From the sequence record PP886230.1: a stretch of 64,000 nucleotides of DNA; one strand, written 5' to 3'. Below, piece after piece: positions 1-64,000 of the stretch; position 1 is the stretch's first letter; every line of letters begins with the position of its first letter. The position numbers and the translations under genes were made by a program. Under the pieces are notes generated by a model. It had not been told where the DNA came from and ran no database searches. It saw nothing but the letters and a program-made list of their open reading frames with translations.

Positions 1-231
1 TATGTAAAAGATGAGTACTATGAAAGTGTATATTATTTTTTATGGCAACATTACCGTACTATAGTAAGAGATTTATATATAGGAAAATCTATCATATCCA
101 ATGGTGAAAAATGTATCTGTACGGATGTAGTTAGTTTTAATGGTTCTTTAACACTGTGTTTCAGATGCGATAATAATAGTGGGTCATTTTCATTAAACGT
201 ATATCAGTTAGAAGGAATAAATTTTGAATAA
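1..231 (+). CDS. Hypothetical protein, 5'-truncated (small KYIG-motif family)
   Basis: Frame 1 is open from the window edge to TAA at 229-231 and reads ...RDLYIGKSII..., like the neighbouring small paralogs. Confidence 0.6.
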   Translation, partial: YVKDEYYESVYYFLWQHYRTIVRDLYIGKSIISNGEKCICTDVVSFNGSLTLCFRCDNNSGSFSLNVYQLEGINFE

Positions 232-424
232 ATGTCCATATTGTAACAGTACTCAATTAGCTCGTTTCCGTTTAGATTCAGACTGGGCGACTGGTGCTGG
301 TGATTTCTTCCCTATTAATGATGATGCAGAATACACCGAAGAACAGCACAAAGATTTTGATAAATCATGGCGACCTGACATTGAGTGCATTTATTGCCTT
401 AATTGTGAGCGTGTTCATGACTAA
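224..424 (+). CDS. Small Zn-finger-like protein
   Basis: CPYC and CLNC pairs; TTG start after GAAGGA. Confidence 0.6.
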   Translation: MNKCPYCNSTQLARFRLDSDWATGAGDFFPINDDAEYTEEQHKDFDKSWRPDIECIYCLNCERVHD

Positions 425-680
425 AGCTGAACTAATAGTTCATACATATAAAATGATATCAAGTACTGAGTTATCATATAGTGCAGATAATCCAGTACTG
501 GATTATTTTGTTGAATTATTGAAAGAGCATTATATTGGTAAATCACTGATTCTTAATAATATTAATTTCACGGTAAAGGATGTAGCACCTGGAAAAAACG
601 TACTAATAGTATGTGTTACTTCATCTGATAACCCAGTATACCCAATATCAATAATTTTTGAGATATTAGGAGATTTATGA
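417..680 (+). CDS. Hypothetical protein (KYIG family)
   Basis: Start reassigned to ATG 417, overlapping the upstream stop; KEHYIGKSL motif. Confidence 0.6.
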   Translation: MTKAELIVHTYKMISSTELSYSADNPVLDYFVELLKEHYIGKSLILNNINFTVKDVAPGKNVLIVCVTSSDNPVYPISIIFEILGDL

Positions 681-967
681 ATATCATTTTAATGCAGAAA
701 ACATATGCTATATTGGTGAAAGATTATTCCATTACTTTCGATTCACAAGAAAGTGCTCTACATAACCTATACAAAAACGTAACACAAGAATACAGAAATA
801 TGTTTTCTGACTTAGTAGTAGGAAGGTATTTCAGTACTAGAAAATACCCAAAACTTCAAATAGTTGATGTTTCTTTTTATTTCAATGGTCATATTACTAT
901 TCATAGTTTAGACCAAGATTCAACAACGTACTTAAACTTTTCATTTGATGAGGTAACATTTTTATGA
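677..967 (+). CDS. Hypothetical protein
   Basis: GGAG SD; ATGA overlap. Confidence 0.6.
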   Translation: MNIILMQKTYAILVKDYSITFDSQESALHNLYKNVTQEYRNMFSDLVVGRYFSTRKYPKLQIVDVSFYFNGHITIHSLDQDSTTYLNFSFDEVTFL

Positions 968-1140
968 GAACAGTATTTTTTATCTGGAGTCTTTTTTCAT
1001 TGGCAGTACTGACAGTATGTGGGATTTGTTTCCTTTCATCAATTAATACTTGGTATATCAATTTACTATTTCCATTTGTCGGTGTTGGTTTAGGGTTTAC
1101 TTTGCATAGTGTATGTAAGGATTACAATGAGAACAAATGA
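964..1140 (+). CDS. Small two-helix membrane protein (58 aa, not in ORF track)
   Basis: MRTVFFIWSLFSLAVLTVCGICF...LLFPFVGVGLGFTL; GAGG SD; ATGA overlap. Confidence 0.55.
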   Translation: MRTVFFIWSLFSLAVLTVCGICFLSSINTWYINLLFPFVGVGLGFTLHSVCKDYNENK

Positions 1141-1405
1141 AGTACTTATTGCTGAAACAATGAAGATGATTTACAATATCACGTCAGCACAGAATATGCC
1201 CTATCCAACTAAGTCTTTATTGAGGACTGTGTATCTGGGGATAGTACAGGAGTACTACAAATCCAAGCACCGAAGCATTATTAGTGTTTATCGTGATTAT
1301 GAAAGGATTCGTATTTTATTCTGGAACAAGAATCGAGTACGTTCTGAATGTGACCTAGTGGACTTTAAATTAGAGAATCTTTATTGCTATAAACAGGGAC
1401 AATAG
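1127..1405 (+). CDS. Hypothetical protein
   Basis: ATG 1127 after AAGGA. Confidence 0.55.
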   Translation: MRTNEVLIAETMKMIYNITSAQNMPYPTKSLLRTVYLGIVQEYYKSKHRSIISVYRDYERIRILFWNKNRVRSECDLVDFKLENLYCYKQGQ

Positions 1406-1423
1406 TTTAATTCATGATATAAT
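1395..1423 (+). promoter_or_regulatory. GGGAC-class promoter
   Basis: AGGGAC-17 nt-TATAAT with TGA directly before the -10. Confidence 0.65.
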
Positions 1424-1454
1424 AATGGGTAAGGAACAATAATTAACACAAGGA

Positions 1455-2192
1455 GTGTGTGAAATGCTTGACCGTATCCGTTTCGCTACAGAGATGGCGA
1501 ATGAATTAAACATGGCAAATTTCCAAATGTTAACATCAGTAATGGCTGAACATGCATGTGCTTATTCTGTAAGTGGTGTGCAGTGTGGTCAGGAGAATAT
1601 GTTAGCAGATGTTTATAGTGAAGTGCAAAGTAAGCAATATAGTGTAAAGACATATAAGGATAAGTTTGTTAGTCTTTATATGAACGAAGATATTGCCGAA
1701 GACCGTAAATTCACTGATTTTATTATTGAACGCCGAGTATCAGGTGTATCTAATCCTAATGCATCAAGCGAGGAAGTTTTTGCAGAAGTACTGAAAGATA
1801 TATACGAAAATGAATTAAAAAGTAAGAATCATTACAATGTACGTGAAACTAACACAGTGCTCTTGGGATATGATGAAGACGAAGAATACTATTATTTTCG
1901 TATGACTGAAGTTCCTTTTGAATACAAATCTCCATATACAACTACAGTGAAAGAATTTACTGAAAAAAGTAAAAACTTCATGAAGCATGAAGGAAATCGT
2001 TGTAGTATAAATGGTTATGACGAAAATGGCATTCACATTTATGAATGGGTTCACCCAAATTGTCAGACATACACTCGTTGCTTGAAAAAACGTTATAATT
2101 TAGAAGAGCATGAATCATTCTATTTTAAAGTTAAGAAGCAAGGTTACACTCGCCCCGCCGATTCTGAATTGATGGGTATGATATATTTCTAA
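1455..2192 (+). CDS. Hypothetical protein (245 aa)
   Basis: GTG start after AAGGAG, downstream of a promoter. Confidence 0.7.
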   Translation: MCEMLDRIRFATEMANELNMANFQMLTSVMAEHACAYSVSGVQCGQENMLADVYSEVQSKQYSVKTYKDKFVSLYMNEDIAEDRKFTDFIIERRVSGVSNPNASSEEVFAEVLKDIYENELKSKNHYNVRETNTVLLGYDEDEEYYYFRMTEVPFEYKSPYTTTVKEFTEKSKNFMKHEGNRCSINGYDENGIHIYEWVHPNCQTYTRCLKKRYNLEEHESFYFKVKKQGYTRPADSELMGMIYF

Positions 2193-2202
2193 GGAAACTT
2201 CT

Positions 2203-2484
2203 ATGGATTTTTATCTACACACATGGACATACGAACAATATATTACATTATATCTTGAAATTATTAACACAGAACCTAGGTGTGGTTGTTGGTTCGCAGA
2301 TATCATAAAAGAGTATGCTGACGAGTTCGAGTTTGTGTATCTTGGGTCTGATATATTTGTAAAAAGTGTAGGTAAAACCGGACGAATCACTGATATAGAT
2401 TACGACACTGTTAGTGTCAATTTCTATGTTGATTTTCCTGATGCTGGCGTTGATGGTGTATATTGTCTTTATGAAATAATTTAA
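2203..2484 (+). CDS. Hypothetical protein (KYIG-like family)
   Basis: AAGGA SD; FVYLGSDIFV...GRITDI. Confidence 0.6.
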   Translation: MDFYLHTWTYEQYITLYLEIINTEPRCGCWFADIIKEYADEFEFVYLGSDIFVKSVGKTGRITDIDYDTVSVNFYVDFPDAGVDGVYCLYEII

Positions 2485-2490
2485 ATTCTT

Positions 2491-2515
2491 AGGCCAGCGT
2501 TTGCTGGTCTTTTTT
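2491..2515 (+). terminator. Rho-independent terminator
   Basis: AGGCCAGC-GTTT-GCTGGTCT followed by a T-run. Confidence 0.75.
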
Positions 2516-2528
2516 CGCAGGTACAAAG

Positions 2529-2831
2529 ATGTTCAGTATAGATTTAATTAACAGTACTATCAAAATGTTGGCTGATTTGGTGAGACAATCCAATGGAACT
2601 TTATATCCATCAATGTATAAAATGTTTGACCGATACATCAAGGATTGTAACATATCATTATATGGACTTGCTGTTGATATAGACGATTACTATGGAATTA
2701 ATACTTCATATAAAACAGGAATTTTAATTGGTATTAATATAAAGATGGGGTATTTACCTTATTACTGTATAGGATTACCAGATAATACTTTTGTAGAATA
2801 TCCAGCCAGTACTATTAAATTAAGAGGATAA
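2529..2831 (+). CDS. Hypothetical protein
   Basis: ORF in a packed + strand run. Confidence 0.55.
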   Translation: MFSIDLINSTIKMLADLVRQSNGTLYPSMYKMFDRYIKDCNISLYGLAVDIDDYYGINTSYKTGILIGINIKMGYLPYYCIGLPDNTFVEYPASTIKLRG

Positions 2832-13835: not shown

Positions 13836-15254
13836 ATGAGCATTTTAGCAATTCTAGAAAGCATTAAAAATACTAGCAGTACACTAGGCAAAAAAGCTAT
13901 TCTTGAACAAAATAAAGATAATGTAACTTTACAAAAAGTACTGAAATATACTCTAGACCCTTCTATCGTTAGTGGCTATAAGAAGCTCCCTGCCGCTGAT
14001 GACGTATATCAACATATGACGTTAGATGAAGCAATTGATAAGCTAGAATGCATTTACAAGCGTGATGTGACAGGAAATGCGGGGCGTGATTTCATTGCTT
14101 CAGTACTGGGTTCAGTATCAGAAGATGATCAAGAAGTTCTCCGTAAAATGCTTACTAAAAACCTTGATTGTGGTATTCAAGAAAAGAACTGCAATGATGT
14201 ATTTGGTAAAGGCTTTATTAAAGACGAACCATATATGCGTTGTTCTTTGATTGACAAAAAGACTGCAAAGAACATTAACTTCAAAGATTATGGTTATGCT
14301 ATATCAGAAGTGAAAATGGATGGTCAGTACTTGAACCACGTTGTCATTAATGGTTCATTAACTTCTACATCCCGTAATGGTAAACTATACGACTTCCTGG
14401 GTTGTCGAGATGGTGAGATGGCAGGTCTTGCTCACATCATCCAAAGTAAAGATGAACGTTTTAGTAGTGGTGTAGTCTTTATGGGTGAAGGTGTAGTACT
14501 GGACAATGATGGGGAAACAATTCTCCCACGCACTACTGGCAACGGTATAATTCAGAAAGCTGGAAAAGATAGCATCAGTCAGAATGAAGCAATGCGTACT
14601 GTATTCGTTCTATGGGATGTTGTTCCATATGATGCATTTTGTGAAGGTGTATGGGATGTAAAACGTAAAGAACGTCGCGAGATCTTAGTAGATGCAATTA
14701 ACGAACTCAATAGTGATTTTGTTCGTATGGTTGGATTCCGTAAAGTTCTAAACATCAAAGAAGCATTTGAGTACAATAGTGAACTAATGAACGAAGGTGA
14801 AGAGGGTTCAGTACTGAAATGTGAAGATGGTATCTGGAAATCTCACACTTCTCCGAAGCAGTTGAAAATGAAATTGAAAATGCAACTAGACTTGCGTATT
14901 GTTGGTTTCAATGAAGGTGAAGGTAAACGTAAAGGAAGCCTAGGTTCTTTACAACTGGAAAGTGCTTGTGGTTCATTGAAAGTTAATGTGGGTACTGGTA
15001 TCAAAGAGAAAGATGCTGAATGGACATTTAAAACCATTTGGGAAAGAATGCAAGAACTTATTGGTAAAGTGGTTACAGTTGAGTGTAATGACATTGTATT
15101 CGAGAAGCGTACTGGTGAGCCATCACTGTTCTTACCAGTGTTTATTGAATTTAGATTTGACAAAAACACTTGTGACGACTATACTCGTATTTTAGAAATT
15201 CGTGATAGTGCTGTTGAGGTGTTCTCAAACAGTATCATTGAATCACTTGGCTAA
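13836..15254 (+). CDS. lig: ATP-dependent DNA ligase (T4 gp30-like)
   Basis: N-terminal STLGKKAILE DNA-binding domain; motif I EVKMDG; EGSVLK; C-terminal OB fold with SLFLPVFIEFRFDK. Confidence 0.95.
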   Translation: MSILAILESIKNTSSTLGKKAILEQNKDNVTLQKVLKYTLDPSIVSGYKKLPAADDVYQHMTLDEAIDKLECIYKRDVTGNAGRDFIASVLGSVSEDDQEVLRKMLTKNLDCGIQEKNCNDVFGKGFIKDEPYMRCSLIDKKTAKNINFKDYGYAISEVKMDGQYLNHVVINGSLTSTSRNGKLYDFLGCRDGEMAGLAHIIQSKDERFSSGVVFMGEGVVLDNDGETILPRTTGNGIIQKAGKDSISQNEAMRTVFVLWDVVPYDAFCEGVWDVKRKERREILVDAINELNSDFVRMVGFRKVLNIKEAFEYNSELMNEGEEGSVLKCEDGIWKSHTSPKQLKMKLKMQLDLRIVGFNEGEGKRKGSLGSLQLESACGSLKVNVGTGIKEKDAEWTFKTIWERMQELIGKVVTVECNDIVFEKRTGEPSLFLPVFIEFRFDKNTCDDYTRILEIRDSAVEVFSNSIIESLG

Positions 15255-20782: not shown

Positions 20783-20844
20783 CTGTTATAAACTGTACAC
20801 CTTAAGTTTTATTTTTAAAAATTTGAGTTAAGTACAGAAAAAGT

Positions 20845-20873
20845 TTGACTTAAGTGTTTAAGTACTATATTAT
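20845..20873 (+). promoter_or_regulatory. Sigma70-type promoter
   Basis: TTGACT-17-TATTAT. Confidence 0.55.
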
Positions 20874-20908: not shown

Positions 20909-21517
20909 ATGAAAAGACTATGGCTTGAAGTGATACAAGCAGCGATGTTTCTATTGTTAATAAATTTTCCAGCCAGTGCTGGTATTGAAAGTAAAAATGT
21001 GATAAAGTATAATCCTGAAACCCGAAATGTATATTTCATATCAGATATTACAGATGGGTCACTCAAGAGAATGATAGAGTTGTATGATAAAGAACACTAT
21101 GATACCATCACAATTACATCTCCTGGTGGTGATTTTGATGCAGGTATTCGAATGGCAAACTTTGTTAGAGACAATGGGATAAATTTAATTGTTTCTAGGT
21201 ATTGCAATTCAGCATGTACTGTGGTATTCTTTAGTGTATCTCCCGAAAAGCGATATATGACAAATCGCTCAGTACTGGGTCTTCATAACATTTCGATTAA
21301 AAGTAATGTTACTGATGGTGATAATTCATTTGTGTCTGTAAGACAGCTATCAACTTTTACCGAAGAAATGGCAACAAAGGTAGGTTTCCTTTTTTCACTA
21401 TATGCAGCAAATGGAATCCCACCAGAAGTTCTATTTAGAGTTAGTCGTTCTCGTGGTGAAGATGTTGTAATATTAACAAAACCAGAACTGGTTTTTTACG
21501 GTTCAGTCAAACAATAA
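20909..21517 (+). CDS. Exported ClpP/crotonase-like serine peptidase
   Basis: Signal peptide-like N-terminus ending ASA; ITSPGGDF, CNSAC (putative Ser nucleophile) and LGLHN. Confidence 0.65.
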   Translation: MKRLWLEVIQAAMFLLLINFPASAGIESKNVIKYNPETRNVYFISDITDGSLKRMIELYDKEHYDTITITSPGGDFDAGIRMANFVRDNGINLIVSRYCNSACTVVFFSVSPEKRYMTNRSVLGLHNISIKSNVTDGDNSFVSVRQLSTFTEEMATKVGFLFSLYAANGIPPEVLFRVSRSRGEDVVILTKPELVFYGSVKQ

Positions 21518-22438: not shown

Positions 22439-22465
22439 AAGTACTAATATTATAAGAGAGAATAG

Positions 22466-22660
22466 ATGATGGCATACACAATTTATGAATGGGTTTTGAG
22501 TTTTTTTATAGTTTTTTCTATTGTTGTAATTTATAACAATGCTAAATGCTTATATAGGGACTTGAAATCCAATGGTTATCACAAAGATAATAATTTTATG
22601 TATGCCTATCATATTGGAATCATTCTGTTATTATCAATATATTTAATTGTTTTTTTATAA
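22466..22660 (+). CDS. Small membrane protein
   Basis: Two hydrophobic segments. Confidence 0.5.
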   Translation: MMAYTIYEWVLSFFIVFSIVVIYNNAKCLYRDLKSNGYHKDNNFMYAYHIGIILLLSIYLIVFL

Positions 22661-29090: not shown

Positions 29091-29135
29091 TATCAGTACT
29101 GTCATAATGGCAGTACTTTTTAATTGGAGATTACT

Positions 29136-29750
29136 ATGACTACATCGGAAAAGTACTGGTGGATTTTGGCTCATCCTAAATTCATAAACAAAGATATGGT
29201 TCCAGCTAGGATTGATATAGAACCTCATGATGTGTGTCCAATGACAAATCGAATTGAAGATTTCAAAGCATTGAATACAAAGACTCAATTTTGGGTAGAA
29301 TTTCTTTCACCAATGTATATTGAGCAAGACGACGAATGGGTACAAGCACATGATTATCAATTGGATTGTGGTGGTGATACGTATGAAGAGGCGATTGATA
29401 AATTATACAAAAATGTGCTAAACACATATGGTGATTACACCCAACAAGAAGCAGATAACACATTTAATAAGATCCATGCATTCAAATCTACTCCATCAAT
29501 TTTTAATCCTACTAAAACTGTTTGGGAGGAACGACACAGTTGGAGTTCATGTGTAATCGATGAAGAAACCAAAGAAAAAATCATCGATGATATAAAAAAT
29601 TTAAAAAATACGATAGAAGCCTTGCGTGAATTCATAATGTCTTGTACAATAGAACAACAGAAAGAGGCAAAGATACATTTGGAGAGTGAAGAATGTAAAC
29701 TTTGGGTTCTAGAGAAATCTATTGAAAAGGGTATAGACTTAGACTTATGA
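29136..29750 (+). CDS. Hypothetical protein
   Basis: ATG after GGAG. Confidence 0.65.
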   Translation: MTTSEKYWWILAHPKFINKDMVPARIDIEPHDVCPMTNRIEDFKALNTKTQFWVEFLSPMYIEQDDEWVQAHDYQLDCGGDTYEEAIDKLYKNVLNTYGDYTQQEADNTFNKIHAFKSTPSIFNPTKTVWEERHSWSSCVIDEETKEKIIDDIKNLKNTIEALREFIMSCTIEQQKEAKIHLESEECKLWVLEKSIEKGIDLDL

Positions 29751-33928: not shown

Positions 33929-34370
33929 TTTAGTAAATGGAGAGGGCGTTCGCTGCTCTTTATTTGTTAGTGGGTGTTCGCACGGATGTGATGGTTGCTT
34001 CAATGAAGAAGCATGGGATTACAGAAGTGGTCAATTGTTCAGTACTGAAACAGTTGAGATTATACTACAGGAACTAAAAAAACCATATGTTAGTGGTTTG
34101 TCACTTCTAGGCGGCGATCCATTAATGAAAAAGAATATAGATGAAGTTTTAAATCTATGCAAAGTAGTTAAAGAAACTTATCCTAGTAAAACTATTTGGT
34201 GCTGGAGTGGGTATACTTTAGATGAGATTATGAAAAATCATGCTAAAGATATACTTCAGTACTTAGATGTATTAGTTGATGGTAAGTTTATTGAGTCCGA
34301 AAAGAATTTAAAATTACCTTTTCGTGGTTCAAATAATCAAAGAATACTATATAAAAATAAAGATTTTTAG
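33900..34370 (+). CDS. nrdG: Anaerobic RNR activase (radical SAM)
   Basis: DLVNGEGVR, CSHGCDGC (CxxxCxxC), LLGGDP, FRGSNNQ. Confidence 0.95.
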   Translation: MNYQTIIKDDLVNGEGVRCSLFVSGCSHGCDGCFNEEAWDYRSGQLFSTETVEIILQELKKPYVSGLSLLGGDPLMKKNIDEVLNLCKVVKETYPSKTIWCWSGYTLDEIMKNHAKDILQYLDVLVDGKFIESEKNLKLPFRGSNNQRILYKNKDF

Positions 34371-42158: not shown

Positions 42159-42560
42159 ATGACTACAGTTGATGATATCTACAGCACTATACGCAATATG
42201 AGTACAGATAGAAAAGTATTTGGTGATAAAGAAAAATCTAAGTGTTATGGTATTGATTCTTTTGATATAATTTCTTATGAGTACAACACGAGTGGAAATA
42301 GTTCACTGAATATCGTCTGCCCTCGTGACCCAGAAAATAATTTTATGTATGTTGAAATTAATAATGATGGAATATTTTTTACAAAAGTTTTTAAAGGTGG
42401 AATTAATTACGAACCAATTGAATGTATGAATGAAGAAACTTTCTTTCAAGAAGATACAATTATCAATTTAGGTTTTAGTTTTGATGATTATAAAACATTA
42501 GAACATGACTTTAATCGTTATTATAACGGTTTCTTAAAGGAGTTAACAATTTATCTATGA
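42159..42560 (+). CDS. Hypothetical protein (EHFQ-motif family)
   Basis: MNEETFFQEDTIINLG. Confidence 0.6.
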   Translation: MTTVDDIYSTIRNMSTDRKVFGDKEKSKCYGIDSFDIISYEYNTSGNSSLNIVCPRDPENNFMYVEINNDGIFFTKVFKGGINYEPIECMNEETFFQEDTIINLGFSFDDYKTLEHDFNRYYNGFLKELTIYL

Positions 42561-43789
42561 ATAACCAATATGTTGAACAAACAATAGTGAAACACTTGGC
42601 TGGGTCACAAGCCTACGGAACCAGTACACCTGAAAGTGATACTGATTATCGTGGTATTTTTCTTGCTAATAAAGAATTTATTCTTACGCCATTCTATAAG
42701 GTCAAAGAAGTAGCTGATAAAAATGAAGAAGATACTAAATTCTATGAGTTAAATCAGTATTTAAAATTATACACTGAAGCCAACCCTAATATATTGGAAT
42801 CACTATGGGTCGATCCAGAACACATTGTAGAAAGTACTGAGATTTATGACTATCTTCGTTCATTTAACCAAAAACTTCTTAGTTCCAAGATTGCATTTTC
42901 ATACACTGGATATGCATATAATCAGATTAAGCGTATGACAAATCATCACGGTTGGATGGATAAAGAGCGTATTGCTGAAAAACGATTAAATGAGATTTTA
43001 GAAGAACACCCTGTCGATGAGGTTCTTGCGTGGATGTATGATTCATTCCCACAGTATCTTGTTGAACGTTTAGATACATCCAACTTACATCCATTTAATG
43101 CTAAAAAGATTGATTTTGAAAAATATATGCGTGATACGTCATTGCAGTTAGTTTCGAAAAATCCATTAAAGCAATATCATTTTGTAAGATTAGTGCATAA
43201 CTACACTACTGAAAAAATTCTTGATCGTGATTTCAATTTATTGAATTTTAATAATGGTTATGAACTAATTCATTACGGAGAAAACATTTTTGCGATTATT
43301 AAAAATCCGAATGAAAGCACTATCAACGGTGATGGATCATTGCGTTATTTTTCTAAAGAGCGTAGTACTGAAGAGTTGAAAACCAAACCAGAACTAATTG
43401 TCAAATTTAACGAAAAAGAATATCAGGAAAATAGTGAGAATAGGAAAAGTTATCATAAATGGAAAGAAAATCGTAATGCCAAACGTGCTATTTTAGAATC
43501 ACAACACGGATACGATTGTAAACATGCTATGCACACAATCCGACTTTTGAATAGTGCAGAAGAAGCATTACAAAGTGGAATTATTCAAGTTAAACGACCA
43601 GATGCACAAATGTTGATGGATATTCGTAATGGTAAATGGAAGTATGAAGAAGTATTAGAATATTTCGATGATAAAGTACAATACATTCGTGATGTTCTAT
43701 ATAAGAAATCAGTACTTCCTAAAAAACCAAACATCAAGTTAGCATCAAAAATTATCATTGATATTAGAGAAATGCAATGGTATAAGTAA
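42557..43789 (+). CDS. Pol-beta-superfamily nucleotidyltransferase (RlaP/YcgL-like)
   Basis: GSQAYGTSTPESDTDYRG (GS...DxD); ANPNILESLW; GYDCKHAMHTIRLL. Confidence 0.8.
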   Translation: MNNQYVEQTIVKHLAGSQAYGTSTPESDTDYRGIFLANKEFILTPFYKVKEVADKNEEDTKFYELNQYLKLYTEANPNILESLWVDPEHIVESTEIYDYLRSFNQKLLSSKIAFSYTGYAYNQIKRMTNHHGWMDKERIAEKRLNEILEEHPVDEVLAWMYDSFPQYLVERLDTSNLHPFNAKKIDFEKYMRDTSLQLVSKNPLKQYHFVRLVHNYTTEKILDRDFNLLNFNNGYELIHYGENIFAIIKNPNESTINGDGSLRYFSKERSTEELKTKPELIVKFNEKEYQENSENRKSYHKWKENRNAKRAILESQHGYDCKHAMHTIRLLNSAEEALQSGIIQVKRPDAQMLMDIRNGKWKYEEVLEYFDDKVQYIRDVLYKKSVLPKKPNIKLASKIIIDIREMQWYK

Positions 43790-48513: not shown

Positions 48514-49125
48514 ATGAACAAATATCATGTTTACTATACGACAAAATTATCACTTCTTGAAGAATTAAATCAACGAAGTACTAAGATGAAACGCTACACT
48601 TTAAATGGTATTACTTTTCGATATTTCCCACAAAAAGTTCTTACTTTTGTTAAGAATCCAAAATGCGTGGCATGTGGGATTGAAGCTACTGAAGTACGCA
48701 TTGAACGTTCATTATGTTCTGATCCAGTATATGGTAAACCACATTTAAATGTATATGCTGTATGTGGTCTTTATGAAGTTTTAATGACAGTTGACCATAA
48801 TCATCTGGCATCTAAGGGTGGACCTGATTTAGAGTCAAACTTTAATACTATGTGCTCCAGATGTAATCAACTACGTTCGAATAAAACTGAAACAGTTGAT
48901 GAGTTTCTTGAGAAAGTTAAAGGTCGTAATCTTCTCCAAGAACATATGAATAATTTCTTTAATGTACAAAAAAAGAAAAATAACATTGACAAGTCGAAAC
49001 TACTAGAAGAACGTAGGTTACGTCAAGAATTATGGGAAACTGATCATCTATGGCATGTTCGAGAGTTTGGTCGTCATATGAAAGCTTTGAAAAAAGAACA
49101 GAAGAAATTGAATAAACATGATTGA
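48514..49125 (+). CDS. HNH endonuclease-domain protein
   Basis: CVACG; MTVDH...SKGG...NFNTMCSRCN. Confidence 0.75.
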   Translation: MNKYHVYYTTKLSLLEELNQRSTKMKRYTLNGITFRYFPQKVLTFVKNPKCVACGIEATEVRIERSLCSDPVYGKPHLNVYAVCGLYEVLMTVDHNHLASKGGPDLESNFNTMCSRCNQLRSNKTETVDEFLEKVKGRNLLQEHMNNFFNVQKKKNNIDKSKLLEERRLRQELWETDHLWHVREFGRHMKALKKEQKKLNKHD

Positions 49126-49178: not shown

Positions 49179-49535
49179 ATGAAATCTAAAATCTTTTTAC
49201 CACAATTAATGTGGCATCTAGCAGAGTTAGATGAAAATGATGAATATACGGACTATGGTGCATGGGATGACAGTACTGAAACTTTTAAACCAGATGTAAA
49301 ATATAAAATCATCTGCAATGAAAGCAAAGGACACAAAAGGTGGACTGAAGAATTTGATCTCGTATTTCTTGACATGAGCACAAATAAGTTTTATCATTGT
49401 ACTTATGAACGAGGTTTAACAGAAGATAGACCAGTACAACCATTCAGTACTGAAACTGATGGTGTTAAGTGCAATGAAGTTTCTGTTACCAGAGAAGAAA
49501 TTATCACTTATCGAACTTTGTGGAAATATTTGTAA
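49179..49535 (+). CDS. Hypothetical protein
   Basis: GGAG SD. Confidence 0.6.
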   Translation: MKSKIFLPQLMWHLAELDENDEYTDYGAWDDSTETFKPDVKYKIICNESKGHKRWTEEFDLVFLDMSTNKFYHCTYERGLTEDRPVQPFSTETDGVKCNEVSVTREEIITYRTLWKYL

Positions 49536-50241: not shown

Positions 50242-50423
50242 TACAAGAAAGTTGCGTCCAAAATTTGAGAACAAGTACTACTTTGATCGAATAGAGTTAG
50301 TACTGAGTGCTGTTGATGAAAAGACCAGCGACCGTTGCATATGACTGCGATAGAGAGAAACCGAGCAACCCGCTTTCGCTCTCTAAATTTTGGTACAAGA
50401 AAGATCCGTCCAAAATTTGAGAA
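50242..50423 (+). repeat. 30-nt direct repeat (2 copies, 28/30 identical)
   Basis: TACAAGAAAGTTGCGTCCAAAATTTGAGAA (50242-50271) and TACAAGAAAGATCCGTCCAAAATTTGAGAA (50394-50423). Confidence 0.9.
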
Positions 50424-51086: not shown

Positions 51087-51527
51087 ATGGAAGATATTAA
51101 TGATTTACGACACGTAATGGACTTTATCGGAAGTACTGAAGAAGATAATTCATATGATGAAGTACTATTAACTTTTATTGAAAATAGTTTGTTTTTAAGT
51201 TCTGCTGCACATAACTGGCACTTACAATGTCATTTTTATACAAAGCATTTACAATTAGATGAACTATATAAAGAATTACCAGAATATGTAGACGCATTTG
51301 TTGAAGGTATCATGAATAATCGTGGTGCTTTACAAGTTGGAACTGGTAATAGTTACCGTTTTACACCAATTGAAGATTGTGTACCAATTCTTGAAGAATA
51401 TGTTGAGCAATGTAGAGCAATTCATGATATGCTTGAAGAATCAGGTGATTACGGCAGTGTAAACACATTAGAAGATATTATGAGTTTTGTTGAAGGAACA
51501 CTTTACAAACTTAAAGTTTTACAATAA
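51087..51527 (+). CDS. Dps/ferritin-like four-helix-bundle protein
   Basis: AHNWHLQ...KHLQLDELYKEL...DAFVEG; AAGGAG SD. Confidence 0.7.
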   Translation: MEDINDLRHVMDFIGSTEEDNSYDEVLLTFIENSLFLSSAAHNWHLQCHFYTKHLQLDELYKELPEYVDAFVEGIMNNRGALQVGTGNSYRFTPIEDCVPILEEYVEQCRAIHDMLEESGDYGSVNTLEDIMSFVEGTLYKLKVLQ

Positions 51528-52205: not shown

Positions 52206-52559
52206 ATGAGTGATTACCGCGTAACATCTGGACTAATGGCACGTCTTATTGAAGCAGTTCCTGAAGATGATTATGAAGCTATTTCAGATCGTCTTTTTGA
52301 CGCAGATTCTAAACTCCATATTACATATGATGGTGCATTGATTTACAGTACTGATATTGATATGTCTAGTTATGAATTTGAGATTTCTTTTGGTAACAAA
52401 CTAACTACTGAAGAATTCGCTCGAAAATGTGAGCGTGAAGGATTCTGTATTGATATTAGTTCAGTTCAGCCATATACATCACTGTGGTATGATGGTGCTG
52501 ATAGTCCAATGTCTACTACATCTTTACAGGATTTTCTAAATGCAAATCAAAAAGATTAA
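52206..52559 (+). CDS. Hypothetical acidic protein
   Basis: GAGG SD. Confidence 0.65.
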   Translation: MSDYRVTSGLMARLIEAVPEDDYEAISDRLFDADSKLHITYDGALIYSTDIDMSSYEFEISFGNKLTTEEFARKCEREGFCIDISSVQPYTSLWYDGADSPMSTTSLQDFLNANQKD

Positions 52560-52932
52560 ATTCCACCAGCATTGTTCTATACATGAATGTGATGATTGTG
52601 GTATACAAATGAGTGACATTTATACAGTTTCCTGTAAAGGTTTCAAATTCACTCACGGTGAACCTGCTTATTGTTATGGTACAGAAGAAGGTGATATCGA
52701 AGTAGTACTGAAAGAATTGTTCCAGTACTTGCAAAGTGTAGGTCATGATGTTACAATACCCACATATTATGAAGATGATTATGATGCACATGTAGAAGAA
52801 AATACATATTATAATCAATTCGTTTATGGTAATGGTTTTATCACATATCTACATGAGAATGGTATTGAGGTAAAAACTAAGTACACCAGTGATGATTATG
52901 ATGATGATAATTCTATGGAGATTGAAGATTGA
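52540..52932 (+). CDS. Hypothetical acidic protein with a CxxC motif
   Basis: HECDDCG; HGEPAYC. Confidence 0.6.
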   Translation: MQIKKIKFHQHCSIHECDDCGIQMSDIYTVSCKGFKFTHGEPAYCYGTEEGDIEVVLKELFQYLQSVGHDVTIPTYYEDDYDAHVEENTYYNQFVYGNGFITYLHENGIEVKTKYTSDDYDDDNSMEIED

Positions 52933-59910: not shown

Positions 59911-59911
59911 T

Positions 59912-61100: not shown

Positions 61101-61533
61101 ATGCGTTATAGTTGTGGTATAATATTTTATCGTGATGGTCAGATACTTATCGGACATACAACACGGACAGAATCATTGGGATTTACCTAAAGGGAAAGCT
61201 GAGGGTAATGAAACTTTCAAAGAAGCTGCTGTACGTGAATGTTTCGAAGAGACAGGATACGAAATCGATGAAGATGATCTTCTGTTTCTTGGTGATGTAT
61301 CCTATAGAAAGGGAAAAAGGTTAGTACTTTTCTTTTATACTGCCAAAGACAAACCAATACCAGATGAATTAGTTTGTAAAAGTACTTACACTAATAGATA
61401 TGGTAAGAGTCATCCAGAATTGGATAAGTTCATGTACATTGATGTACGAGAATGTCAAAAGTATTTGACTGAACGAATGTGTAACAGTATTATTAAAGCT
61501 GTTAAAGCTTTTCAAAGAAATAGAAGGAAATAA
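61101..61533 (+). pseudogene. NudE-like Nudix hydrolase with an apparent +1 frameshift at ~61164
   Basis: ATG 61101 reads MRYSCGIIFYRDGQILIGHTT; the +1 frame continues GQNHWDLPKGK...AAVRECFEETG (Nudix box). Removing one base gives a T4 NudE-like protein. Confidence 0.75.
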
Positions 61534-61534
61534 C

Positions 61535-61783
61535 ATGAAAGTTAAAATTTATGGTCGCAAGACTGGTTGTAAATTTTGCGACACTGCAAAAGCTGTATGT
61601 GAACAAAATAAATTTGAAATGGAGTTTGTAGATATTGTTGCTGAAGGTATCGATGGTTCAAAACTGTCTGAAATTTGTGGTGAACCAGTTCGTCAAGTTC
61701 CTCAAATTTTCGTAAATGACATTTATGTACCAGGTGGTTGTACTGGGTTTATTGAAGGTCTTAAAGAAGGTCGTTGGAACTAA
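61535..61783 (+). CDS. Glutaredoxin (NrdC/NrdH-like)
   Basis: KIYGRKTGCKFC; VRQVPQIFVND...GG. Confidence 0.9.
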   Translation: MKVKIYGRKTGCKFCDTAKAVCEQNKFEMEFVDIVAEGIDGSKLSEICGEPVRQVPQIFVNDIYVPGGCTGFIEGLKEGRWN

Positions 61784-62025
61784 TGGATATTGAAAAAGTA
61801 TCATCTCGTGCAAAACAACTAGCTGATACGTTGGGAGTAGAGTTCAAAATTCCTGATATTTCAATAGCTAAAGAAAAAGCCCAGATTAAAATTAACAAGA
61901 TGAAAGAATATCTATCTAAACAAGAACAGTATGATTCCGCTGTCGAATTTATTGTAAAATCTTTTAGTAAAGATGATATTTTGGCATTTATCAAACATGT
62001 GAAGGTTTCTGGCAACCCTAAATAA
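61783..62025 (+). CDS. Hypothetical protein
   Basis: TAATG overlap. Confidence 0.6.
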   Translation: MDIEKVSSRAKQLADTLGVEFKIPDISIAKEKAQIKINKMKEYLSKQEQYDSAVEFIVKSFSKDDILAFIKHVKVSGNPK

Positions 62026-62071
62026 ATGTGAAGAACAAAAAGTTCTTCTTAACAATTTGGGAGATACTATT

Positions 62072-62314
62072 ATGCTCAGTTTTCGTGAACAATTAGCAAA
62101 AGGTCAATTTCAGGCTAAAGCTCAAACTAATATTCCTAAAAAATCTGCATTTTTAGGAACAATTACGGAAGATGGATTTTGTGATTATGATGCACCAGAA
62201 GATTCATGGTACATTACAAAAGACACAAAACGCAGTAATAGACTTCACAAAAGTACAATAGCTAGAAAGCATCGAAAAGAATTAAAGAAAATCCGTTTCG
62301 GTGAAGAAGAATAA
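62072..62314 (+). CDS. Hypothetical basic protein
   Basis: ATG 62072 after GGGAG. Confidence 0.6.
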   Translation: MLSFREQLAKGQFQAKAQTNIPKKSAFLGTITEDGFCDYDAPEDSWYITKDTKRSNRLHKSTIARKHRKELKKIRFGEEE

Positions 62315-62322
62315 TTTAAAAT

Positions 62323-62351
62323 AAGGACTCTGACCACAGAGTCCTTTCTTT
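62323..62351 (+). terminator. Rho-independent terminator
   Basis: AAGGACTCTG-ACCA-CAGAGTCCTT-TCTTTT. Confidence 0.8.
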
Positions 62352-62363
62352 TCGGAGAATATA

Positions 62364-62840
62364 ATGATTCATGAACACCGAGGTAATCTGTTTGAATTAT
62401 TCAGTACTGTAACAGATGATAAAACAGCAATACATATAATTGCTCATGGTTGTAACGCACAGGGTAAAATGGGTTCAGGTTTTGCAAAAGAGCTAAGAAA
62501 TCGTTACCCAATGGCATATGATGATTATAAAGCATATGAAAAGGAAATGGGATTTCTTAGAATTGGACAAATTGCATATTCAGCAATTAACGATAATTTG
62601 ATTATTGCAAACTGTATTACCCAAAAAATGTACGGTAATGACGGTGCTAAATATGTCAGTTATGATGCAATCGACGATGTGTTCAAACATCTAAATTATT
62701 TTTGTAAAGTTGATCGAGATGTTCATGTACACTTCCCGAAAATTGGAGCCGATTTGGGCGGCGGTAACTGGAACGTTATCAAAGAAATCATTGATCACCG
62801 ACTGGTCAATGCAGAAAAACACTTATACATTCTAAAATAA
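62364..62840 (+). CDS. Macrodomain protein (ADP-ribose binding/hydrolysis; T4 Tk.4-like)
   Basis: GNLF, IAHGCNAQGKMGSGFA, IANCITQ, FPKIGADLGGGNW. Confidence 0.88.
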   Translation: MIHEHRGNLFELFSTVTDDKTAIHIIAHGCNAQGKMGSGFAKELRNRYPMAYDDYKAYEKEMGFLRIGQIAYSAINDNLIIANCITQKMYGNDGAKYVSYDAIDDVFKHLNYFCKVDRDVHVHFPKIGADLGGGNWNVIKEIIDHRLVNAEKHLYILK

Positions 62841-62850
62841 ACAAAAGGAC

Positions 62851-63168
62851 TTGACAAAAATGACTATGACCGTTAAACTACTAAACATCAATAACATTGG
62901 CCCAGTACTAGCAGTTCTTCAAACCGATTCTGCTGAAGCTGTTGTAGTTAACTACCCAGCACAACTAGGGACTGACGAAAATGGTGAAATCATTCTTCGT
63001 GATTATCTAGAGTTTGTTAGTATGGAGAAAAATGTTATTTTTTATAAATCCAACATTATTAGTGTTAGTGATGCAAACCCTGCATTAGTTGATGCTTATG
63101 TTGATGCTATTAAAGCAATCGAAAACACTCCAAAAGTTTTCGTTCCTGAGAATAAAATCATTCTATAA
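62851..63168 (+). CDS. Hypothetical protein
   Basis: AAGGA SD; ends in ENKIIL. Confidence 0.65.
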   Translation: MTKMTMTVKLLNINNIGPVLAVLQTDSAEAVVVNYPAQLGTDENGEIILRDYLEFVSMEKNVIFYKSNIISVSDANPALVDAYVDAIKAIENTPKVFVPENKIIL

Positions 63169-63180
63169 TAGAGGTATATA

Positions 63181-63558
63181 ATGGCTGCTAATGACGTTAA
63201 AGTAAAAACTATCCAAGCTATCGTAGTACTGAAAGATTCTACACCATCCCCTAAAGAATTAGTAATGGCTGGGATGACTATGTTACATCAATACAACCCT
63301 GAATCACCTAACTATGTTCAAGAATACGAAGCTAAGAAGTTTAAAGAACATTGGCAGTCATGGATTAAAGATAATGAAATGGAGCAGGTAGTATATGCTG
63401 CTGATGACATTTTCGAACTGGAACAAATTGAATATCTAGCTGGTCAACAATCAGTGCCATTGAGCATTTTCGGAAATGGTGAAGAAGTTCTGGTATTGGG
63501 ACCATTCACTGCTGATGATATCATTCACTTACTGAGTAATTGTAAGAAAATTGAATAA
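63181..63558 (+). CDS. Divergent PTH2-fold-like protein
   Basis: IQAIVV...W...EQVVY...VLVLGPFTADDI..LL resembles PTH2 ends, but the QxxHA motif is absent. Confidence 0.35.
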   Translation: MAANDVKVKTIQAIVVLKDSTPSPKELVMAGMTMLHQYNPESPNYVQEYEAKKFKEHWQSWIKDNEMEQVVYAADDIFELEQIEYLAGQQSVPLSIFGNGEEVLVLGPFTADDIIHLLSNCKKIE

Positions 63559-63769
63559 AAATTCAAAACTATCAGGTTACCGTAACAACACGTTGAAGTA
63601 CAATGATATTAAGTACTGGGTTGATCCTTACTTAAATAAATCATTGTTAATGTACAGAGATAAATCACGAGATCTATATGGAATATATGTTACTCAGTTA
63701 ATATATATAATAGATTCCGAACATTTTACTCCATTGGTATACCTGTACTGCTTGTATAATTCAAAATAA
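63551..63769 (+). CDS. Hypothetical protein
   Basis: Overlapping ORF in a packed run; TTG start. Confidence 0.4.
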   Translation: MNKNSKLSGYRNNTLKYNDIKYWVDPYLNKSLLMYRDKSRDLYGIYVTQLIYIIDSEHFTPLVYLYCLYNSK

Positions 63770-63774
63770 CTATT

Positions 63775-63819
63775 AGCACCTCTAAATAATGTATATAAAC
63801 ATTAATGAGGTGCTTTTTT
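63775..63819 (+). promoter_or_regulatory. Hairpin enclosing a late promoter and occluding the neck-gene SD
   Basis: AGCACCTC (63775-82)/GAGGTGCT (63807-14) stem; CTAAATA at 63782-88; T-run follows. Confidence 0.65.
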
Positions 63820-64000
63820 ATGTCTTACGATTATATGGGTGGAAACCCTGATGCTCCTAACTTTGACCATCGTGAAAAACTGAAAGATGTTATCACTCAA
63901 ATGTTGGGTGCTGGGGCCGTTGAGGTAGAAATTACTGATGGTCAATTAGAAATTGCAATTGATAATGCGGTATCGAATTACAGAGCGTGGAGTTCTGCTT
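63820..64000 (+). CDS. Neck protein (T4 gp13-like), 3'-truncated
   Basis: Translates MSYDYMGGNPDAPNFDHREKLKDVITQMLGAGAVEVEITDGQLEIAIDNAV, cf. T4 gp13 [25 protein letters not shown]. Confidence 0.75.
   Translation, partial: MSYDYMGGNPDAPNFDHREKLKDVITQMLGAGAVEVEITDGQLEIAIDNAVSNYRAWSSA

Follow-up and report, generated by a model that had tools for sequence, protein, structure and literature searches.

Chi (GCTGGTGG in E. coli), KOPS, and the DUS/USS words are short exact sequences that occur far more often than chance predicts, in coding and noncoding DNA alike. Words of the Chi type are selected for a function in DNA processing, turn over at single sites while their density is kept, and are rare in foreign DNA, so that they can serve as markers of self; Chi and KOPS are asymmetric and biased in orientation, with a known translocase as the reader of each. 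In the Enterobacterales, the palindrome GATC, the word of Dam, SeqA, and MutH, recurs every few hundred base pairs, evenly through genes, with clusters at special loci and copies within some promoters, and is read via its methylation state. In Bacillus phage SPO1, which has hydroxymethyluracil DNA, the abundant phage protein TF1 binds SPO1 DNA preferentially and turns off early transcription, with favored sites in the strong early promoters of the SPO1 terminal redundancy. Short palindromes are typically avoided by phages, and the targets of ScaI-type enzymes are normally among those avoided.

The word analyzed here, AGTACT, is likewise an exact sequence far above chance in coding and noncoding DNA, is rare in foreign DNA, and turns over at a constant density, and we infer that it too is selected for a DNA-processing function; its over-representation is genome-wide and maintained by selection, as is that of Chi and KOPS. 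It differs from those two in being a palindrome, ~10 times denser (1 per 360 bp), phage-borne, and embedded in promoters. The even spacing through genes, the clustering at special loci, and the presence in some promoters are shared with GATC; however, GATC, as a tetramer, occurs about as often as chance predicts and needs no enrichment, whereas AGTACT is a hexamer enriched eightfold. With the TF1 sites of SPO1 it shares a genome geography, namely, a dense terminal repeat and promoter-embedded sites, although TF1 recognizes a modified base and loose sequence features rather than an exact hexamer. Finally, AGTACT is the very palindrome that ScaI and Eco255I cleave, and it is set apart with the single-base discrimination typical of such enzymes, yet it is the commonest hexamer of the phage described below, so that a function other than classical restriction is needed. 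No cognate ScaI/Eco255I-type enzyme pair was found, nor was an HU-like or other reader found in RaK2-like phages.

The window, a stretch of 64,000 nucleotides from the 368-kb genome of the RaK2-like jumbo phage Escherichia phage vB_EcoM_E9.1 (PP886230.1), contains exactly 170 AGTACT sites, one per 376 bp. The original prediction, a hand tally, had put the number at about 170 against ~22 expected by chance, and both figures proved accurate: base composition gives 21.5 (at a GC content of 33.4% rather than the ~31% first estimated), and dinucleotide-preserving shuffles give 17.3 ± 4.1, with a maximum of 28 and none of 100 shuffles reaching 170. AGTACT is the most frequent hexamer both in the window and in the whole E9.1 genome, where it occurs 1,030 times, and it stands at ~8 times its chance frequency throughout the DNA of E9.1 and its lineage of giant (~350-kb) phages of enteric bacteria. 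Under a maximal-order Markov model, the observed/expected ratio in the window is 1.21, but this null is circular, the signal being present already in the pentamers AGTAC and GTACT. Site counts per 2 kb are under-dispersed in the window (chi-square of 17.9, 31 df, lower-tail p = 0.03).

Positions 1 to 64000, no strand: the carpet of 170 AGTACT sites, the first at 14 to 19 and the last at 63612 to 63617

Coding sequence holds 162 of the 170 sites, and the codons AGT, ACT, GTA, and TAC are fairly common. The codon-preserving shuffle suggested with the prediction was run, and the excess stayed: shuffling synonymous codons within genes yielded 42.1 ± 5.5 AGTACT against 164 observed (z = 22), and codon permutation yielded 23.2 ± 4.8 (z = 30), ratios that are not near 1. 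Under both nulls, AGTACT has the highest z-score of all 4,096 hexamers. The word had been said to occur in all three frames (76, 56, and 30 sites, by our count), and the alternative of an excess limited to one frame or amino acid pair fails, every frame being in excess: about 76 to 77 sites versus 17.7 expected as AGT-ACT (Ser-Thr), about 56 to 57 versus 11.7 as xxA-GTA-CTx (Val-Leu), and 30 versus 4.2 as xAG-TAC-Txx (Tyr). In each frame, the excess combines synonymous choice (4- to 7-fold) with over-used permissive amino acid pairs (1.3- to 1.6-fold). The reverse-order pair ACT-AGT occurs once versus 10.7 times expected. An artifact of codon or dicodon usage was thus rejected, the z of 22 being obtained with protein and codon usage fixed and all three frames contributing. 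Intergenic DNA takes part as had been claimed, with 7 sites in 2,573 bases, a density equal to that of coding DNA. Over gene bodies the distribution is flat, at 2.3 to 2.9 sites per kb whatever the gene length.

The selected word is sharply bounded. With codon usage controlled, the 18 one-mismatch neighbors of AGTACT have z-scores from −2.2 to +3.0, and in every genus they stay near baseline while the core is 8- to 13-fold over-represented, with drift in the flanks only. The near matches AGTACA and TGTACT, which had looked common to the eye, are not enriched after this control (z = 0.6 and 2.0, respectively), and the pentamer AGTAC alone is likewise unenriched, AGTACA, AGTACC, and AGTACG all being at baseline. 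Flanking bases are nevertheless preferred: C precedes the word at 78 of the 170 window sites and G follows it at 80, each departing from background at p < 1e−19. This preference is strong on both sides and roughly strand symmetric, yet 133 of the 134 window genes lie on one strand. The predicted extension to the octamer CAGTACTG holds, with 34 copies in the window versus 0.6 expected from composition. The unique genome contains the 12-bp perfect palindrome TTCAGTACTGAA 14 times, and 6 of these occurrences fall in the terminal repeat.

Positions 493 to 62409, no strand: the 34 octamers CAGTACTG (composition-based expectation, 0.6)
Octamer starts, first half: 493, 1004, 3557, 5243, 8334, 12486, 13373, 14101, 14809, 15344, 19279, 21270, 23259, 24751, 25054, 25531, 26995
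Octamer starts, second half: 27997, 29094, 32116, 33031, 34040, 36137, 37700, 40446, 49271, 49445, 52346, 53078, 54718, 55792, 58864, 59416, 62402
Positions 14807 to 14818, 34038 to 34049, and 49443 to 49454, no strand: the three window copies of the 12-bp perfect palindrome TTCAGTACTGAA

High AGTACT is a trait of the RaK2-like lineage. The word is 6- to 13-fold enriched in all four RaK2-like genera sampled, the enterobacterial Asteriusvirus, Alcyoneusvirus, Eneladusvirus, and Mimasvirus, and in uncultivated relatives, and it ranks first or second among hexamers in six genomes from the four genera. It is depleted in PA5oct (1 versus 17 expected) and Atu_ph07 (3 versus 17), the next relatives of the RaK2-like phages, and also in phAPEC8 (3 versus 14), T4 (7 versus 17), and E. 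coli (3 versus 12); phage DNA carries ~45 times as many sites per unit length as 50 kb of sampled host sequence. Between aligned orthologues of ~59% identity, AGTACT numbers are equal (42/41, 45/43, and 46/44), with only 5 to 11 sites shared, and amino acid differences coincide with more than half of the lineage-specific sites. The number per kb is thus held steady while single sites turn over. Sites are also conserved above their surroundings, 67% being shared versus 40% for a local same-frame control (p = 3e−8) and, in a second comparison, 51% versus 21% (p = 3e−10). Taken together, the codon-fixed excess, intergenic parity, symmetric flanks, site conservation, and presence in four genera uphold the original conclusion that the excess reflects DNA-level selection for a dispersed cis-signal, and this selection acts on the exact duplex hexamer independently of coding. 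The candidate functions offered with that conclusion, a protein-binding site, a signal like Chi, KOPS, or matS, and a methylation mark, are reasonable ones.

The terminal repeat, which lies outside the window, contains 6.6 AGTACT per kb versus 1.7 to 3.4 elsewhere, making it about three times denser, and its first 1.7 kb, mostly noncoding, contains 9 to 10 per kb. It carries sigma70-type early promoters, and in two genera these promoters have two AGTACT, 20 to 22 bp apart, that bracket the −35 element and abut the −10 element. In both E9.1 and CBB, a minority of sites adjoin the −35 element and lie 0 to 2 nt upstream of the −10 element, and the commonest distance between paired AGTACT is 20 bp in E9.1 and 21 bp in CBB. 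In line with a promoter link, AGTACTTGCAA occurs 13 times on the plus strand and once on the minus strand, and AGTACTGTATAAT occurs 15 and 2 times, respectively. In the window, the sites at 20861, 22440, 29095, and 52724 hold a fixed position relative to −35/−10. These and the other intergenic or paired sites of note are as follows.

Positions 20843 to 20873, plus strand, intergenic: promoter-type site with TTGACT, a 17-nt spacer containing AGTACT (20861 to 20866), and TATTAT
Positions 22440 to 22453, plus strand, intergenic: AGTACT followed after 2 nt by the −10-like TATTAT, ahead of a coding sequence starting at 22466
Positions 29095 to 29117, plus strand, intergenic: AGTACT pair 17 bp apart (29095 and 29112), AGTACTgtCATAATggcAGTACT
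Positions 50274 to 50304, no strand, intergenic: AGTACT pair 25 bp apart (50274 and 50299)
Positions 52704 to 52757, plus strand, inside the coding sequence at 52540 to 52932: AGTACT pair 20 bp apart
Positions 63612 to 63617, no strand, intergenic: lone AGTACT between a coding sequence ending at 63558 and one at 63650 to 63769, with the adaptor gene starting at 63820

The site at 20843 to 20873 lies upstream of a protease gene (start at 20909), and its AGTACT, 1 nt upstream of the −10-like hexamer, reproduces the architecture of the terminal-repeat early promoters. The pair at 29095 to 29117 is followed by a ribosome-binding site and then an ATG at 29136. Within the coding sequence at 52540 to 52932, the second site of the pair forms a sigma70-like internal promoter module (AGTACTTGCAA, 17 nt, TACAAT; genome coordinate 114704). 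A promoter-only role was rejected: 162 of the 170 window sites are in coding sequence, the distance from AGTACT to the next start codon is indistinguishable from uniform (p = 0.67), and by this test the sites are not concentrated upstream of genes. Since window sites bear no relation to gene starts, a regulatory role covers only a minority of them.

One 7.7-kb block outside the window excludes AGTACT and is enriched in strand-specific AGTACA, with 41 copies on the plus strand and none on the minus strand (no TGTACT). GTACT occurs once on its plus strand versus ~7 times expected, and the sixth position calls for A in particular rather than for non-T bases in general (A:C:G = 41:2:1). The pattern is kept in 121Q and Turkey3, with ongoing turnover of the block sites. 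The main word, being palindromic, has no orientation, and only this Asteriusvirus block is oriented.

The lineage-wide excess points to an undescribed protein or enzyme that recognizes phage DNA as self through AGTACT. Our best guess, offered tentatively, is that early promoters are gated, and phage DNA is marked as self, by a sequence-specific reader of duplex DNA. A clade-specific factor, most probably a symmetric dimer, would recognize duplex AGTACT with the sharpness of a restriction enzyme; the palindromic word, the flank bias on both sides, and the baseline pentamer all support symmetric duplex reading. Candidates are a phage-encoded protein, possibly delivered with the virion, or an enzyme together with a reader of its mark. 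Bound at roughly 900 places in each genome, the factor would label phage DNA as self, a label that could serve to compact or organize the 350-kb genome or to protect it from the phage's own host-directed nucleases. Bound at the two sites bracketing −35 and abutting −10, it would gate early transcription, much as TF1 favors SPO1 DNA and the early promoters in it. Counting against such a reader, ~900 sites per genome in many genome copies would demand a very abundant protein, and so sharply defined a hexamer resembles a restriction or modification target more than a transcription factor site, sites of the latter kind usually tolerating variation. No recognizable DNA-binding domain was found in the phage sigma factor neighbors or the AGTACA-block proteins, and the strand-specific block, which would not be expected of a simple symmetric dimer, is unaccounted for by this reading. 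More speculatively, RaK2-like jumbo phages could run a private, sequence-based system for marking self DNA, whose clade-specific reader would both tell phage from host DNA and time the early promoters. The ~900 AGTACT would then be kept at the expense of protein sequence and despite the exposure to ScaI-type enzymes that they bring, and AGTACA would be a second, strand-specific dialect of the Asteriusvirus group governing one 7.7-kb gene block. If true, this would to our knowledge be the first genomic signal word of the Chi/GATC class in a virus, with a new reader protein or enzyme.

Unlikely, but the most substantial of the rivals, is an epigenetic mark, in which a phage DNA methyltransferase, or another base modification, acts on AGTACT and the resulting methylation state is read, as in a private analogue of GATC and Dam; it could distinguish parental from new DNA or phage from host, time the early promoters that contain the word, guide nicking or repair, or license packaging. 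An exact 6-bp palindrome of restriction-grade sharpness that is itself the ScaI site (the cognate ScaI methylase is an N4-cytosine enzyme) fits this role, as do the orphan methyltransferases that these phages encode, the position of AGTACT beside −35 and −10, like that of GATC in Dam-regulated promoters, the low level of host-type GATC throughout the clade (0.43 to 0.75 of expectation), and an even spread at a few hundred base pairs with turnover at constant density, as suits a strand-discrimination mark. However, no plausible methyltransferase is common to all of the enriched genera: a PF01555 N4/N6 enzyme is present in Mimasvirus and Eneladusvirus only, the 286-amino-acid enzyme of E9.1 is an unrelated C5 methylase (PF00145), and the sole type found in all genera is a generic Dam-family enzyme (PF05869) widespread in unrelated phages. 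Methylase targets are not normally enriched eightfold, so that a reader would still be needed, and symmetric methylation is impossible at AGTACA. The block, all on the plus strand (41:0) and kept in 121Q and Turkey3, suits an oriented signal that a machine travelling along one strand would read, with the palindrome serving both strands at once; this could be a primase on the lagging-strand template or a helicase-nuclease with a Chi-like switch. Spacing of ~400 bp independent of genes, a peak density at the DNA ends where exonucleases enter, and rarity in host DNA, as befits a nuclease self-marker, agree with this, and CAGTACTG ends in CTG, the start triplet of E. coli DnaG. We nevertheless consider a single-strand signal quite unlikely: outside the block, AGTAC is unenriched when the next base is A, C, or G, and it is the whole palindrome that is selected there; the block's sixth base is specifically A; the fixed promoter positions go unexplained; and we know of no phage with a 6-bp word of the primase or Chi type.

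Restriction-like sharpness would also suit a phage endonuclease (e.g., HNH) that nicks AGTACT for recombination-dependent replication or T5-like virion interruptions, and the genome contains T4-type recombination genes along with several genes for HNH or other endonucleases, of which one lies at 48514 to 49125 in the window. Nicking of the palindrome on both strands would, however, break the duplex every 360 bp, none of the enzymes can be matched to the activity, and the promoter positions are again unexplained, making programmed cleavage improbable. Hardly credible is an origin without function, through very-short-patch-like biased repair that makes AGTACT, much as Dcm/Vsr repair inflates CCWGG in E. 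coli, or through codon or dipeptide usage. AGTATT is slightly low (z = −2.2), and the component codons are fairly common, but no neighbor is depleted enough to supply an eightfold excess, and on this ground a Dcm/Vsr-like origin was rejected. Single sites kept above the local control, equal intergenic and coding densities, an excess that survives codon-preserving nulls in every frame, the scarcity of ACT-AGT, and a conserved block that excludes AGTACT altogether all argue against it as well. The enriched phages all infect Enterobacterales, whereas the nonenriched relatives PA5oct and Atu_ph07 infect Pseudomonas and Agrobacterium, a distribution that would fit a site or decoy for an Enterobacterales protein such as SlmA, by which phage DNA would block host division. 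The SlmA site (GTGAGTACTCAC) shares with AGTACT a host order and its 6-bp core; it is a 12-bp palindrome whose positions 1, 2, 4, and 5 need G, T, A, and G, with a purine at position 3 (PMC3020112). No match to GTR-AGTACT-YAC exists among 897 sites genome-wide, the window's 170 included, half-flanks are 2- to 3-fold depleted (10 versus 27 and 13 versus 23 expected), and a preceding G (−1) and a following C (+1) are avoided throughout the genera; the relaxed site GTRAGYRCTYAC occurs nowhere in the E9.1 genome. AGTACT is thus not of the SlmA-site family, SlmA-site mimicry was rejected in silico, and a host-factor decoy is very improbable.

A lineage of the largest coliphages therefore keeps, by selection, a restriction-type palindrome as the commonest word of its genome, a carpet that implies a sequence reader with a genome-wide role. 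Such a reader would bear on the means by which a 350-kb phage whose cytosine is unmodified distinguishes self from host DNA, on how early promoters are switched off, and on how so much DNA is organized and protected, and it might prove to be a new sequence-specific DNA-binding or DNA-modifying protein. AGTACT-specific restriction systems are predicted to hit these therapeutic-candidate phages hard, unless the sites are modified. AGTACT density also provides a simple signature of RaK2-like fragments in metagenomes, and in IMG/VR the promoter module is found almost only in RaK2-like contigs of 345 to 378 kb.

The window corresponds exactly to bases 62,001-126,000 of the 367,851-bp genome of Escherichia phage vB_EcoM_E9.1 (E9.1), which is a RaK2-like jumbo myovirus (Asteriusvirus; PBECO4/121Q/G17 group). 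Its PP886230.1 annotation comprises 134 CDSs, 133 of them on the plus strand, with 96% of the sequence coding. The genes have early and middle functions, and the products include RNA ligase, polynucleotide kinase, DNA ligase, NrdD/NrdG, PhoH, Sir2, Nudix hydrolases, two dCMP deaminases, and tail proteins. AGTACT, the most frequent hexamer, occurs exactly 170 times against 21.5 expected from base composition, in close agreement with the original tally of about 170 sites against about 22. Dinucleotide-preserving shuffles gave 17.3 ± 4.1 copies and never more than 28. Cytosine precedes the word at 78 of the 170 sites and guanine follows it at 80. The extended form that had been proposed, CAGTACTG, is likewise real (34 occurrences against 0.6 expected), and longer extensions occur at nine sites (TCAGTACTGA) and three sites (TTCAGTACTGAA).

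Codon usage and dipeptide frequencies do not account for this excess. Shuffling synonymous codons within each gene, with proteins and codon usage held fixed, left 42.1 ± 5.5 copies against the 164 found in CDSs (z = 22), and permuting whole codons left 23.2 ± 4.8 (z = 30). Under both null models AGTACT ranked first among all hexamers, followed only by shifted versions of itself. All three frames contributed: AGT-ACT (Ser-Thr; 77 against 17.7 expected), xxA-GTA-CTx (57 against 11.7), and xAG-TAC-Txx (30 against 4.2). The permissive amino acid pairs were themselves in excess (Ser-Thr, 127 against 83; Val-Leu, 171 against 107.5), and the reversed control pair, ACT-AGT, occurred once against 10.7 expected. 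Intergenic DNA is as dense in sites as coding DNA (7 sites in 2,573 bp). A maximal-order Markov model returned an observed/expected ratio of 1.21 in the window, which we discounted as circular, since the AGTACT signal is already contained in the 5-mers.

The 18 one-mismatch neighbors of AGTACT had z scores of only −2.2 to +3.0 in the window; therefore, the signal is the exact hexamer, and the suggested abundance of AGTACA and TGTACT is not borne out there. A repair or mutation drive of the Dcm/Vsr type would deplete precursor words and is not supported, since the precursors of AGTACT are not depleted. The preference at the ±1 flanks is strong on both sides and roughly strand symmetric while almost all genes run in the same direction, which argues for recognition of duplex DNA rather than mRNA. 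Taken together, these results show that an exact duplex hexamer is under strong selection, bearing out the earlier inference that selection acts at the DNA level.

Within the window, the sites are spread uniformly. The distance from a site to the next start codon did not differ from uniform (P = 0.67), density was flat over gene bodies and amounted to 2.3 to 2.9 sites per kb at every gene length, and counts per 2 kb varied somewhat less than a Poisson distribution predicts (variance/mean, 0.56; P = 0.03). Outside promoters, spacing showed only the codon period of 3, with no helical phasing at 10 to 11 or 21 bp. A role confined to promoters was rejected, the window sites having no positional tie to gene starts.

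The word was then counted in 42- to 50-kb samples of six RaK2-like phages and in more distant genomes, including two jumbo phages, PA5oct and Atu_ph07, that are cited as relatives in the literature.

AGTACT in samples of other genomes
Turkey5 and WPEC5, divergent Asteriusvirus-like: enriched
Klebsiella phage RaK2, Alcyoneusvirus: enriched
Yersinia phage fHe-Yen9-04 and Erwinia phage pEa_SNUABM_47, Eneladusvirus: enriched
Pectobacterium phage CBB, Mimasvirus: enriched
Pseudomonas phage PA5oct: 1 observed, 17 expected
Agrobacterium phage Atu_ph07: 3 observed, 17 expected
Coliphage phAPEC8, unrelated: 3 observed, 14 expected
T4: 7 observed, 17 expected
E. coli K-12, 50 kb: 3 observed, 12 expected

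AGTACT was the first- or second-ranked hexamer in all six RaK2-like samples (5.6- to 8.9-fold), so that the excess is present in all four genera, and it reached 13-fold in pooled sets that included early regions. It was depleted in the distant relatives and controls, and the phage is about 45-fold richer in the word than the host DNA sample. Enrichment is a trait of the whole clade, in which density is held constant. Across genera the core is invariant and the flanks drift, C..G being preferred in Asteriusvirus and Alcyoneusvirus and A..T in Eneladusvirus and Mimasvirus. G..C flanks are avoided in every genus; GAGTACTC occurs 0 to 3 times per sample (the window and the six genus samples).

We followed individual sites through codon alignments of orthologues, with a local same-frame control. 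In WPEC5 (82% nucleotide identity), 69 of 103 window sites are kept, compared with 40% in the control (P = 3e-8), and in Turkey5 (71.5% identity) 47 of 92, compared with 21% (P = 3e-10). At about 59% identity just 5 to 11 of about 45 sites are shared, and aligned blocks carry equal numbers in each genome (42/41, 45/43, and 46/44). More than half of the lineage-specific sites coincide with amino acid differences. The dynamics are those of purifying selection on single sites combined with stabilizing selection on density.

For genome-wide counts, the whole E9.1 record was assembled from annotated stretches. AGTACT is its commonest hexamer, with 1,030 copies (8.3-fold over expectation), at 6.6 per kb in the terminal repeat, 2.7 in the window, and 1.7 in the structural and replication core.

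Terminal repeat and promoter-associated sites
E9.1 genome 1-20,107, repeated at 347,745-367,851: direct terminal repeat of 20,107 bp, packed with small early genes
CBB, L022:1-22456: counterpart of the E9.1 terminal repeat
Window 20861, 22440, and 29095: intergenic AGTACT beside a −10-like hexamer
Window 52729-52757: TTGCAA-N17-TACAAT, a good sigma70-like promoter inside CDS 52540-52932, begun by AGTACT at 52724

The first 1.7 kb at the physical genome end is mostly noncoding and holds 17 copies in E9.1 and 15 in CBB (9 to 10 per kb). Many sites in the repeat are parts of sigma70-type early promoters: each of the small early genes is preceded by a sigma70-like promoter with two copies, often paired 20 to 22 bp apart. 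One copy directly adjoins the −35 hexamer (AGTACTTGCAA; plus strand 13, minus strand 1), and the other lies 0 to 2 nt upstream of the −10 hexamer (AGTACTGTATAAT; 15 plus, 2 minus). The module in CBB is alike, with aaaAGTACTTGCAA or TTGACA followed by N9-10 and then AGTACTtTATAAT, and a peak in pair spacing at 21 bp. AGTACT thus holds fixed positions in early promoters and is especially dense at the genome ends. In the CBB paper the promoters of that phage are called RpoD-like, with an UP-like element; the hexamer and its genome-wide excess go unmentioned there. When IMG/VR was scanned for the module, the matches were almost only RaK2-like contigs of 345 to 378 kb, among them at least seven uncultivated ones, each with a 9- to 23-fold local excess of AGTACT. 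In the window, TTGCAA-N17-TACAAT follows two copies and so probably acts as an internal promoter of the gene that comes next.

Two stretches of E9.1 that lie just inside the left repeat lack AGTACT; no gap longer than 1.9 kb occurs in any other sampled locus.

AGTACT-free stretches and a TGTACT-rich array
E9.1 genome 27,196-34,904 (L013:27196-34904): AGTACA block, 7.7 kb, 22 small genes, no AGTACT
121Q, L020:8001-15719, and Turkey3, L021:8001-16457: the same block in relatives
E9.1 genome 19,971-24,751 (L013): second stretch, 4.8 kb, directly after the terminal repeat, an array of roughly 70-aa paralogous genes
E9.1 genome 328,462-342,576 (L018), minus strand: array of about 13 paralogous RCC1-repeat genes

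AGTACA occurs 41 times in the block (2.7 expected), every time on the plus strand, and its complement TGTACT does not occur. The copies lie in all three frames and in unique contexts, with C at −1 in 19 and G at +1 in 16, as for AGTACT. Paralogue repetition was ruled out by these unique contexts and by synonymous shuffling, which gave 15 ± 3. The base after AGTAC is specifically A (41:2:1 for A:C:G; P = 5e-7). The pattern is not an assembly or base-calling artifact, because in 121Q and Turkey3 (82% identity) AGTACT is likewise excluded and replaced by AGTACA. Sites in the block are conserved at 58% against a 43.5% background, with gains in each lineage, and no aligned nonconserved position reads AGTACT in the other genome. 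In one gene block, therefore, the Asteriusvirus group keeps a second dialect of the word, one that is oriented. With its preferred flanks, AGTACA forms a direct repeat (CAG-TA-CAG), whereas AGTACT forms an inverted repeat (CAG-TA-CTG). The 22 small genes, which have no assigned function, had no homologues among the sampled loci from other genera, and Pfam and PHROGs gave no functional hints for their proteins. The second stretch has 9 copies of TGTACT (1.1 expected), some of them within paralogous sequence; in the RCC1-repeat array this word is raised, at 16 to 17 per 10 kb, perhaps again owing to paralogy.

We found no earlier mention of the motif in the literature searched, which included papers on RaK2, CBB, phAPEC6, and jumbo phages generally. 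Genomes are known to carry signal words in excess (Chi, KOPS, DUS, and GATC); we found no report of a palindromic, restriction-type hexamer that is a viral genome's commonest word, is conserved across four genera, sits in promoters, and has a strand-specific variant block.

What might read the word? A PF01555 N4/N6 methyltransferase lies within the synteny block in the CBB, Erwinia, and Yersinia phages and is absent from the window (locus comparison, window 42159-43789 with L004:36310-37170, L005:36164-37024, and L006:36006-36866). Its gene is located just upstream of a nucleotidyltransferase gene in the Yersinia, Erwinia, and Pectobacterium phages, and the Escherichia group lacks it. Only 18 records contain close homologues, and the Escherichia group is not among them; since that group is equally enriched, we rejected the enzyme as the cause of the excess. 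The E9.1 enzyme of the same length (286 aa) is an unrelated C5 methylase. A small Dam-family enzyme of E9.1 is syntenic with CBB_72, and the family (PF05869) was ruled out as a diagnostic marker, being widespread in unrelated phages. Among the E9.1 products is also a sigma factor of the sigma70 family that has regions 2 to 4; its neighbors have no recognizable domain and drew no hint from Pfam or PHROGs. No reader could be named from the methyltransferases, the sigma factor, or its neighbors.

The E. coli nucleoid occlusion factor SlmA binds GTGAGTACTCAC, which has AGTACT as its core, and its site needs G, T, A, and G at positions 1, 2, 4, and 5 and a purine at position 3 (PMC3020112). None of the 897 AGTACT sites of the unique E9.1 genome has these flanks, half-flanks are depleted (10 versus 27 and 13 versus 23), and not even a relaxed site occurs in the entire genome. 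The phage sites are thus not SlmA sites, and mimicry was rejected. AGTACT also resembles the half-sites of LexA (TACTG/CAGTA) and TrpR (GTACT/AGTAC), a likeness that we set aside because the half-site arrangement is inverted and overlapping.

Our preferred reading is a tentative one: a clade-specific factor may read AGTACT with restriction-like sharpness, its occupancy would mark phage DNA as self, and it would also gate early promoters. Such a reader would work much as TF1 of SPO1 does, which acts on its own phage DNA and on early promoters. A methylation mark with its own reader, a private analogue of GATC/Dam, is a lesser possibility that could coexist with this model; the RaK2 paper describes cytosine methylation in the CpG context and partial restriction resistance and gives no AGTACT data, and the PF01555 enzyme does not follow the enrichment. 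It seems unlikely that the word is an oriented signal on single strands, read by a primase or by a nuclease switch of the Chi type; only the AGTACA block and the dense genome ends favor this. The block, which none of the proposed models predicts, is a hint of machinery that can, at least in part, read a single strand or a single orientation.

Programmed nicks at AGTACT we consider improbable, and binding by a host factor other than SlmA highly improbable. That AGTACT has no function is scarcely credible for a word with single sites under purifying selection.

Other words in the window deviate in the opposite sense to AGTACT. GATC is scarce (96 against 194 expected), as in RaK2-like relatives (0.43 to 0.75 of expectation), a deficit reminiscent of the avoidance of GATC by some enterobacterial phages. 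The rare codon pair ACT-AGT contains CTAG, and the Thr-Ser dipeptide is normal (77 occurrences). Relative to synonymous shuffles, CDSs also avoid TATTTA (13 against 51), TAAATA (17 against 42), and AAAAAA (74 against 144). The first two resemble ATAAATA, which has been reported as the late-promoter word of CBB and GAP32; selection may thus act against stray late promoters within genes. Finally, the gene at window 51087-51527 is annotated as a starvation-inducible (Dps-like) DNA-binding protein and matches DUF5856 in Pfam; its product is possibly a general DNA-coating protein of the phage.
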